From Pavona decussata (taxonomy: Eukaryota): a stretch of 64,000 nt of DNA. A program made the position numbers and the translations under genes. Positions 20,601 through 21,405 of this stretch are shown piece by piece. Each line of letters starts with the position of its first letter. Position 1 is the first letter of the stretch. Below the pieces are notes generated by a model, which did not search any database, was not told the origin of the DNA, and worked only from the letters and a program-made list of their open reading frames with translations. The DNA is taken from contig CDRNST010000037.1 in assembly GCA_977016875.1 (NCBI GenBank), positions 806,001 through 870,000 of the forward strand. The letters are read 5' to 3'.

Positions 20601-21405
20601 AATGCTAGAGGTGGTGGCCATAAACAGTCCTTCTGGAACCTCAACACTAAAACAACAAGTCAGAACAATACAGTCTGAAGTAATCGGTTCTAACAGAAAG
20701 GGGCAAATAACAACAGTCAATAAGTATATAATAATGACCAGTGCAATCTTTTGGGTCTACCTCGGTGTAAAGACCTGTAAAGCTTTTCTTCGTTTTCTAT
20801 CTTTTATCTTCCTTGGCTCTGTTATGTTGACTTGTCAGTGGCTTCTTTGTATTCATTGTTTTATGCCACTTGTGAGTTTCAAGGATTTCACACCAAGGAT
20901 GAATCTTCTCAGGAACGTGGAAAAGTAAAATTGTTCTCCTCGAGCGTGAAACTAACAACAACAAAAAATGCTTTACAGCTTACAAATGAAGCCTCTTATG
21001 TAAAACTTACCCTTTGTTCTTGCTTTCCGTCACAATCTTTTTTTCTGGCGGTTCATAGTCAGAGTCATCAGAGTCAGATTCCTCGTCCTGATGAGCTGGC
21101 ACATTGTGAGCGACATTTGGTTCGGGTTGAGATTCTTTAGTTTCCAAGACGAAGCTCTCGTAAGTTCCTTCTTCTCTCAACTGTTTCTCTACGTCTCTAC
21201 TGCTTTTAATTGTCTTTCCCATCGGATTTACATATTGAAAGAAAATCTTGCCTCCGTCTGAAGATTTCCTTTCACTTATCGTCCATCCTGCTTCCCTCAG
21301 CTTGCCAAAGTCAAGGCCGATCCTTGATTGAACTCCCGAACCCCTGGCTTCATTACCACTTACTGCTAATCCTTTCGGTTGTTTCCTCTTTTTCGTCCGA
21401 GGCAT
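17651..21405 (-). CDS. Kolobok-type DDE transposase, 776 aa, with N-terminal MBD-like domain and C-terminal Cys/His zinc knuckle; exons 21405-21011, 20646-20537, 20075-18637, 18335-18223, 17924-17651
   Basis: All four introns are GT-AG and phase-compatible (2,1,0,2), giving an open 2331-nt CDS. Motifs: CCDGCWLIRGHFS (D1), GTAKSSEG, WQDADS (D2), CGGHVGR, HSNLPESTFS (E); exon 1 GWTISERKSSDGGKIFFQYVNPMGKTIKSSRDVEKQL; exon 5 CKWCGSKTHSRRSHKDCPYN. Confidence 0.85.

Follow-up and report, generated by a model that had tools for sequence, protein, structure and literature searches.

A diverged methyl-CpG-binding-domain module at the N-terminus of a Kolobok transposase in a scleractinian coral

The window analysed here, a stretch of 64,000 nucleotides from the scleractinian coral Pavona decussata (assembly GCA_977016875.1, contig CDRNST010000037.1, positions 806,001 to 870,000), contains at 14011-22304 a complete DNA transposon of the Kolobok superfamily, 8.3 kb in length. 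Residues ~30-85 of the first coding exon of its transposase are a real but diverged domain of the methyl-CpG-binding domain (MBD) superfamily, and the fusion of an MBD fold to an active-type Kolobok transposase can be regarded as highly probable. From its N-terminus onwards, the protein is predicted to carry a basic nuclear localization signal (NLS), a Gly/Arg arm (RG.G..SR), the diverged MBD-superfamily domain and an acidic linker, and the MBD-like module would be the N-terminal DNA-binding or targeting domain of the transposase. That the element is a coral Kolobok whose diverged MBD module serves in this way, with little or no canonical methyl-CpG specificity, is the reading favoured here with moderate confidence. 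The element is apparently autonomous, having intact ends, an open frame of 776 codons, transcripts and many deletion derivatives.

Several independent comparisons place the module in the MBD superfamily. Pfam returned only two families for exon 1, MBD (PF01429; E 0.0026, 17.8 bits against a cut-off of 21) and DUF7028 (E 0.0011, 19.3 bits against 27), both matching residues 36-84 and both under the gathering threshold. The same pair was found again in seven of ten diverged relatives (relatives' scores 14-20 bits), and DUF7028 proved to be the MBD-like domain of plant IDM1-type proteins. A profile built from eight diverse copies (A3) and run against a library of 1.84 billion representative proteins gave 144 matches at E<=1e-3, mostly short open reading frames (ORFs) that are equivalents of exon 1. 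The long matches were true MBD proteins with library-wide E values of 1e-10 to 1e-4, for instance P0218, which holds four MBDs (Pfam 1e-34), P0259 (8e-26), P0191 and P0204, which combine MBDs with zinc fingers, and P0217, which combines an MBD with a homeobox (Pfam ~1e-14 for P0191 and P0217); plant IDM1-type DUF7028 proteins were also matched. Alignment of the A3 profile with an alignment of true MBDs by hhalign reached a probability of 95.1% and an E value of 3.4e-8 over 52 columns, and in a sequence-profile search of the PDB 9-10 of the top 10-15 matches were MBD2, MBD3, MBD4 or SETDB2, with E values of only ~0.1.

Structural modelling led to the same superfamily. AlphaFold2 models made from 9 and 48 sequences consist of a helix-turn, two long strands, a short strand and a helix, with a pLDDT of 85-94 in the core, so that the module is predicted to adopt the wedge-shaped MBD fold of a beta-sheet followed by a helix. 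In Foldseek searches of the PDB, the top 39 and top 43 matches were all MBD or TAM domains (probability 0.75-1.0, rmsd 1.3-3 Å over 40-49 residues, E 0.03-0.7), and a VIA scan of 48,161 representative chains, which is independent of Foldseek, placed SETDB2-MBD, MBD4, AtMBD6 and MBD2 at ranks 1-5 with Z values of 4.7-5.2. Single scores are modest because the domain is only ~50 residues long, and the assignment is carried by the agreement of the Pfam, profile, hhalign, PDB and fold comparisons, not by any one score. The MBD-like N-terminus that had been proposed in a sequence-only reading of this DNA is therefore upheld as an MBD-superfamily fold by profile, hhalign and structure, although the Pfam MBD model, top match together with DUF7028, does not pass its own threshold.

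The residues that read methyl-CpG in MeCP2 are R111, D121, Y123 and R133, that is, two Arg fingers, an Asp and a Tyr. By hhalign, the Asp, the Tyr and the second Arg are aligned to F55, Q57 and K67 of the coral module, and the first Arg to S44, two residues before R46, in a loop shortened by three to five residues. Thus, of the four canonical contact residues, three are absent, and these positions are variable between subfamilies; the first Arg is ambiguous. Among relatives, the second-Arg position is held by K, Y, F, W or N; most of them retain the first Arg, which in several is offset or missing. The missing Asp and the Lys in place of the second Arg, both noticed earlier from the letters, are confirmed by this alignment, whereas the first Arg, earlier counted as present, is less certain than stated there. 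Invariant or nearly so are the R-G-x-G-x-x-S-R arm and the patterns L...G-W, F-x-Y-x-x-P-x-G-K and K-S-x-K/R-x-V...L. The loop G-K-A-F-R-S-K of MeCP2 is the counterpart of the MBD DNA-backbone loop G-K-x-x-K-S-x-K/R, which the coral module retains. Since conservation extends to the scaffold, the arm and the basic loop of the backbone contact, nucleic-acid binding without canonical read-out of 5-methylcytosine (5mC) in CpG is favoured. In this respect the module resembles the non-canonical MBD and TAM domains (the BAZ2A/B TAM, the SETDB1/2 MBD, MBD3, MBD5/6 and plant IDM1 DUF7028), which share its fold, have lost or altered the Arg-Asp-Tyr-Arg reading set and are among its best structural and Pfam matches. 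Those domains, however, belong to host chromatin proteins and none of them lies within a transposase, and the coral module differs in its shorter beta1-beta2 loop and its own conserved N-terminal arm.

The fusion is old. At least four old subfamilies of the coral's own genome carry the module in this position, as do Exaiptasia and other cnidarian-type contigs. Eight paralogous loci in the own genome carry an exon 1 that is 38-50% identical, located 0.5-2 kb upstream of a copy of the core on the same strand, and the same exon order was found in an Exaiptasia diaphana assembly (L049), a Tara coral-metagenome scaffold (L050) and an ENA assembly (L052). Both the MBD-like module and the core are also present in P0047, P0199, P0262 and P0059, which are gene models or transcript ORFs. 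Between subfamilies, the proportion of synonymous differences (pS) in arm and core is 0.74-0.97, i.e. saturated, and that of nonsynonymous differences (pN) is 0.26-0.42; across old subfamilies the module is under purifying selection. The ratio of nonsynonymous to synonymous divergence (dN/dS) of ~0.7-1.0 in young copy pairs indicates neutral divergence, as expected for decaying insertions.

No MBD core is detectable in longer relatives such as P0089 from Branchiostoma and P0061, P0064 and P0081, which retain an N-E-A-x-G-x-G-x-x-S-R arm and/or an acidic S-(D/E)-Y-x-P-x-P motif. Exon 1 of the coral element likewise holds an acidic D-S-D-Y-E-P-P motif, and its N-E-A-x-G-x-G-x-x-S-R arm precedes the MBD domain. 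Because arm and acidic motif are common to relatives lacking the MBD core, exon 1 is not a cleanly captured reader exon; the earlier proposal of a captured exon, if meant as a recent and neat capture, is not supported on this ground and given the age of the module, whose synonymous sites are saturated between subfamilies. The MBD core may be ancestral, with later losses, or may have entered the gene by insertion in a cnidarian lineage. P0191 and P0204 are C2H2 zinc-finger proteins with several MBD-like repeats, and one type of these repeats has a short loop and a Lys for the second Arg (...IIKSRRAV...), much like the transposon domain. They may be relatives or donors of that domain.

Transposases normally find DNA via THAP, BED, helix-turn-helix or zinc-finger modules. 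In published Kolobok transposases, the DNA-binding domain at the N-terminus is usually THAP (PMC6004289), whereas in the coral protein the MBD-superfamily domain follows the RG.G..SR arm, and neither exon 1 nor the core contains a THAP match in Pfam at E<=10. The absence of THAP and the position of the MBD-like module where THAP would stand favour a role in DNA binding or targeting. The DNA target of the module would be the ends of the element itself or chromatin DNA. DNA binding as such is reasonably likely, and recognition of the element's own ends may be put forward only tentatively.

Several points weigh against a DNA-binding module of this kind. The Pfam MBD threshold is missed, and the Foldseek E values of 0.03-0.3 and VIA Z values of ~5 are modest, as is typical of a domain of 50 residues. 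MBD variants without Arg fingers, such as SETDB2 and MBD5/6, often bind protein and not DNA, and SETDB2-MBD is the top VIA match. The ends might in reality be bound by a conserved Cys-rich segment where exons 2 and 3 meet, and a comparison of 9-mers gave no convincing inverted subterminal repeat at both ends that might be the binding site. The four MBD-less relatives named above appear to be full transposases, and hence the module is not indispensable to the family. Finally, the junction of exons 1 and 2 is documented only in RNA of a related organism (run X8).

If the module were instead a methylation reader derived from a captured host MBD gene, it would steer integration towards methylated DNA or away from it, or sense the methylation of the element's ends, e.g. 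full versus hemi-methylation after replication. True homology of the module to MBDs speaks for this possibility, as do the methylation of transposons in cnidarians, where the youngest are methylated most heavily (PMC8857917), and the MBD captured by arthropod Copia elements, which binds methylated CpG and biases insertion (PMC6673714). Moreover, the observed/expected ratio of CpG (CpG o/e) is 0.17-0.37 in the transposase gene body, against ~1.0 at 21308-21808 and 1.0-1.3 at 14011-14808 towards the two ends, a contrast that suggests long-term germline methylation of the body and unmethylated CpG-rich ends, and a conserved CGCG-containing motif lies near both ends. Nevertheless, F55, Q57 and K67 replace three residues of the reading set, the second-Arg position is variable and the first Arg offset or absent in several relatives, no CpG is conserved in the terminal inverted repeats (TIRs), and the arm and linker motifs of MBD-less relatives argue against a recent clean exon capture. 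Insertion flanks do not differ from background in CpG o/e (medians 0.60 for 33 flanks and 0.63 for 370 local 600-bp windows, Mann-Whitney p 0.84), which is a weak test given the small n, a background drawn from the same neighbourhoods and the use of a proxy in place of a methylome. Integration steering or methylation reading, as proposed in the sequence-only reading, finds no support in the three absent contact residues and in the unbiased flanks, the latter being a crude proxy. A reader captured from a host gene is unlikely. That the module reads methylation state in some form is likewise doubtful; a non-canonical reader, equally doubtful, might recognize CpG-rich ends when hemimethylated or unmethylated, or else methylated chromatin, and the transposase would use it for timing excision or choosing targets in a host that methylates young transposons.

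Still less probable is that the MBD-like fold is a protein-interaction module, comparable to those of SETDB1/2, MBD5/6 and MBD3, that would not contact DNA but recruit a host chromatin factor or act in oligomerization or regulation of the transposase. SETDB2-MBD, whose structure was solved bound to a protein partner, is both the best VIA match and a top sequence match, the canonical DNA-reading residues are lost, and the module appears dispensable in related Kolobok lineages. Conservation, however, is highest in the basic loop G-K-x-x-K-S-x-K/R and in the Gly/Arg arm, features typical of nucleic-acid contact, and the N-terminus is the place where transposases, including Kolobok transposases with THAP, have their DNA-binding domain. 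The remaining explanation, namely a chance or convergent small fold without homology or a domesticated host gene, is close to refuted: although the exact window copy is single in the genome, expressed and intact in frame, and the Pfam, Foldseek E and VIA Z scores, taken one by one, are modest or under threshold, the locus is bounded by intact TIRs and TTAA target-site duplications (TSDs), sister subfamilies have copies 97-99.8% identical, dozens of deletion derivatives exist, and the module is tied to true MBDs by profile matches at E down to 1e-10 in the 1.8-billion-protein library, by hhalign at 95% and by the top 39-43 structural neighbours, all MBD or TAM.

The transposase gene consists of five exons (395 + 110 + 1439 + 113 + 271 = 2328 nt, or 776 codons), with GT..AG borders in all four introns and no in-frame stop in any exon (Table 1). 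Searches and folding were done exon by exon, and the frame was verified by adding up the exon lengths and translating each exon. Retranslation of 21405-21010 on the minus strand gives MPRTKKRK..., then ...GWTISERKSSDGGKIFFQYVNPMGKTIKSSRDVEKQL..., with a GTAAGT donor after 21011, so that the coordinates, peptide and NLS-like PRTKKRK reported earlier for exon 1 are reproduced exactly. Further downstream exons were located by means of homologues and tblastn (Exaiptasia P0047, Montipora foliosa P0002 and others). Among named proteins, one from Montipora foliosa is closest, and the gene is colinear with residues 11 to 863 of Exaiptasia P0047. Splicing of exon 1 to the DDE core is in frame, as had been predicted, but it is not direct, since the 110-nt exon 2 lies between them.

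Evidence for splicing was obtained from RNA contigs. Those of runs X1, X5 and X7, which bear the same organism label and are >=99% alike, skip exactly 17925-18222 and 18336-18636, and those of X1 additionally skip 20076-20536, linking exons 2-3-4-5 in the same species. Own-species RNA also covers exon 1 (X1 record 4); the exon 1-exon 2 junction was not captured there. Run X8, an RNA-seq library on record, comes from a related organism and is ~92% alike; in it, one contig joins exon 1 (21013-21423) to exon 2 (20536-20644) and another shows the joint of exons 2 and 3. The four letters lying between the two matched parts of the junction contig equal the number expected from the predicted junction, and the frame is thus kept. 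The 3' untranslated region (UTR) reaches at least 17016. A second CKWCGS..H..H.DCP knuckle segment, in a 73-aa ORF, is located on the minus strand at 16647-16868, ~800 bp past the stop codon, and is spanned by transcript contigs (16500-16970); it might serve as an alternative last exon or have arisen by internal duplication.

Table 1. Features of the Kolobok element and its transposase gene (window coordinates; a dot denotes no strand).
Feature	Position	Strand	Remarks
TTAA TSD, 5' end (relative to the gene)	22305..22308	.	Directly outside the TIR; every full copy examined is flanked alike
5' TIR, GGTATTCCTGGAGGCTAT	22287..22304	-	Terminus GG = RR; TIR plus TTAA pattern 88+88 times genome-wide
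5' subterminal region, promoter and 5'UTR	21406..22286	-	RNA contig X1 record 4 spans 21002-21853
Coding exon 1, 131 codons + 2 nt	21011..21405 (395 nt)	-	
NLS-like PRTKKRK (exon 1)	21382-21402	-	
RG.G..SR arm (exon 1)	21322-21354	-	
MBD-like core, residues ~30-85 (exon 1)	21151-21318	-	Followed by acidic linker with DSDYEPP
Intron 1, GT..AG	20647..21010	-	Junction seen in RNA contig of run X8
Exon 2, 110 nt	20537..20646	-	Encodes ...VPEGLFMATTSSIVSLVDQFNEFFNCSSNKGKCK; conserved in Exaiptasia and other copies
Exon 3, DDE core, 1439 nt	18637..20075	-	Spliced RNA contigs X1, X5, X7, X8
CCDGCW (exon 3)	19684-19701	-	
WQDADSSS (exon 3)	19447-19470	-	
CGGH = CxxH (exon 3)	19366-19392	-	
Cys-rich KCCCAGKKH...CGC (exon 3)	19192-19272	-	
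GHSNLPES (exon 3)	18832-18855	-	
Exon 4, 113 nt	18223..18335	-	
Exon 5, 271 nt (17924-17654), and TGA stop (17651-17653)	17651..17924	-	C-terminal CKWCGS..H..H.DCP knuckle
3'UTR and 3' subterminal region	14029..17650	-	Includes second knuckle copy, CpG-rich end and second E2F-like motif
3' TIR, GGTATTCCTGGAGGCTAC	14011..14028	+	17/18 identical to 5' TIR
TTAA TSD, 3' end	14007..14010	.	

Kolobok elements are recognized by TTAA TSDs, RR..YY termini and a C/DxxH motif that in most lineages precedes a zinc finger (PMC9587614), and all three of the features are present in the window element. Exon 3 contains, in this order, CCDGCW, WQDADSSS, CGGH, KCCCAGKKH...CGC and GHSNLPES, with motif definitions taken from PMC9587614; the catalytic role of the residues in these motifs is putative. 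The second-Asp motif W-Q-D-A-D-S-S-S resembles T-T-D-G/P-D-S-S-S in the Kolobok alignment of that work, and agreement was seen at motif level (TTD-G/P-DSSS and DxxH). When the alignment supplement was looked up for WQDGDSS, WQDADSS, CGGHV, GTAKGAEG and GTAKSAEG, none was found and only the shorter DSSS occurred. In Pfam and NCBIfam, the transposase core has no significant family; PF20700 is a precomputed tag on some homologues only and was not reproduced at E<=1. The likeness to published Kolobok elements (Kapitonov and Jurka; Xenopus XKol, PMC6004289) extends from the TTAA TSD, 5'-RR..YY-3' termini and short TIRs to the DDE transposase, with D-x-D-S-S-S around the second Asp, C/DxxH after it and then a Cys/His-rich stretch, to plentiful derivatives resembling miniature inverted-repeat transposable elements (MITEs) and to cnidarians among the known hosts. 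Besides its N-terminus, the coral gene differs from them in being split into five exons. The transposase is accordingly of Kolobok type, as recognized earlier, on the strength of its TTAA TSD, GG..CC termini, CxxH and D-x-DSSS. A piggyBac element, which TTAA would also suggest, is ruled out: the TTAA TSD is common to both, but piggyBac has CCC..GGG-type termini and another transposase family, whereas the coral element has GG..CC termini and the CxxH signature of the hAT/P/MuDR/Kolobok group.

The ends of the element recur throughout the genome. Its 18-bp TIRs are the variant GGTATTCCTGGAGGCTA(T/C) at 22304-22287 and 14011-14028, the element starting with GGTATT... and finishing with ...AATACC, and sister copies end as TTAA, GGTGGTAC(T/C)GGAGGCTAA ... 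inverted ... TTAA. TTAA flanks the window copy at either end, and likewise copies on C288, C144, C266, C90, C99, C57 and C2. Copies with this layout are 7.5-8.4 kb long, and pairs are 97-99.8% alike, similarity ending sharply at the TIRs; among same-genome alignments, C288 is 97.3% identical to C144 and 99.8% to C266, C90 is 98.9% identical to C99, and C57 is 90-95% identical to C287. The 176 genome-wide TIR ends (88 + 88) compare with 0 for a reversed control pattern, and many of them are paired ~1.8 kb apart, indicating deletion derivatives.

Dozens of such derivatives of ~1.8 kb in the own genome retain the 5' region and exon 1 up to about codon 44 (e.g. G000:C20:79822-81662, C36:1131246-1133086 and C49:5106537-5108380; loci L024-L032). 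Many have an intact 58-aa frame comprising the NLS, the RG.G..SR arm and the first strand and ending in ...GWRITH, and the truncated N-terminal peptide could act as a KP-like competitor of the transposase. In the window itself, a 1.56-kb MITE-like non-autonomous element at 31351-32906 has the same TTAA and GGTATTCCTGGAGGCTAA ends as the autonomous copy, its interior being without similarity to that copy beyond ~35 bp. The C2 copy (G000:C2:2472647-2475430) is 94% identical to window 14007-16799 over the 3' 2.8 kb and only 66-79% identical to the window copy over core and 5' region, a mosaic that suggests recombination or template switching between subfamilies.

An E2F-like motif, TTTCGCGGCAAAAT, lies on the + strand at 21598-21611, ~190 bp upstream of the transposase ATG, and recurs as TTTCGCGG[C/G]AAAA on the + strand at 14165-14178, ~160 bp from the 3' end. 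Other subfamilies have it at matching distances, C57, C2 and C90 near the 5' end (~700-730 bp inwards) and C2, C288 and, with a weaker match, C57 near the 3' end, the chance expectation being ~0.05 matches per element. It may be a cell-cycle promoter element, possibly with a second inward-facing promoter at the 3' end; it is not claimed as a target of the MBD-like module, as it has the same orientation at both ends, is not inverted and looks like an E2F-type promoter element. Just outside the transposon, a 238-bp repeat (22305-22542) adjoins the 5' TSD and has at least 25 other genome copies at 90-94% identity; the family resembles short interspersed elements (SINEs) or MITEs, and insertion of the Kolobok copy may have taken place at the edge of this repeat. 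Also just outside the transposon, a tandem array at ~24480-25650 repeats every ~138 bp and contains identical 44-aa ORFs at 24550-24684 and 24688-24822, its + strand frame being repetitive and Lys-rich.

No DNA transposase with an MBD has been reported in the open-access literature searched in full text, and the suspicion that the fusion was not known in Kolobok agrees with this outcome. The closest and one precedent found for an MBD carried by a transposable element is CopiaMBD, a group of arthropod retrotransposons whose MBD reads 5mC and biases insertion (de Mendoza, Pflueger and Lister 2019, PMC6673714). Both systems encode an MBD-superfamily domain in the same polypeptide as the integration enzyme, in an invertebrate host with mosaic CpG methylation. 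CopiaMBD, however, is a long terminal repeat retrotransposon of Arthropoda with the MBD beside the integrase, whereas the coral element, in Cnidaria, is of the cut-and-paste type with TIRs and TSDs and has no reverse transcriptase or integrase; it is analogous to CopiaMBD and not a member. The CopiaMBD domains are recognized by the Pfam MBD model, group with the MBDs of their hosts and, in DNA affinity purification sequencing, bind methylated CpG, in contrast to the coral domain, which is under the Pfam threshold, lacks most of the methyl-CpG-contact residues and is known here from sequence and models. In the CopiaMBD study, proteomes were scanned with the Pfam MBD model (PMC6673714), and a domain below that threshold would be missed by such surveys.

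With its intact ends, open frame, transcripts and derivatives, the element is a candidate active Kolobok for functional work. With an MBD-superfamily domain kept under purifying selection in this N-terminal position, the range of DNA-binding or targeting modules known from cut-and-paste elements would be widened by a new one, in a setting where cnidarian CpG methylation is aimed at young transposons (PMC8857917). If the module proved to be a methylation reader, this would be the first cut-and-paste transposase known to have an epigenetic reader, and mobile elements would have captured or retained an MBD a second time, independently. The silencing mark of the host would then have been hijacked convergently. 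If methylation is not read, the MBD scaffold would have been re-used for ordinary DNA recognition.

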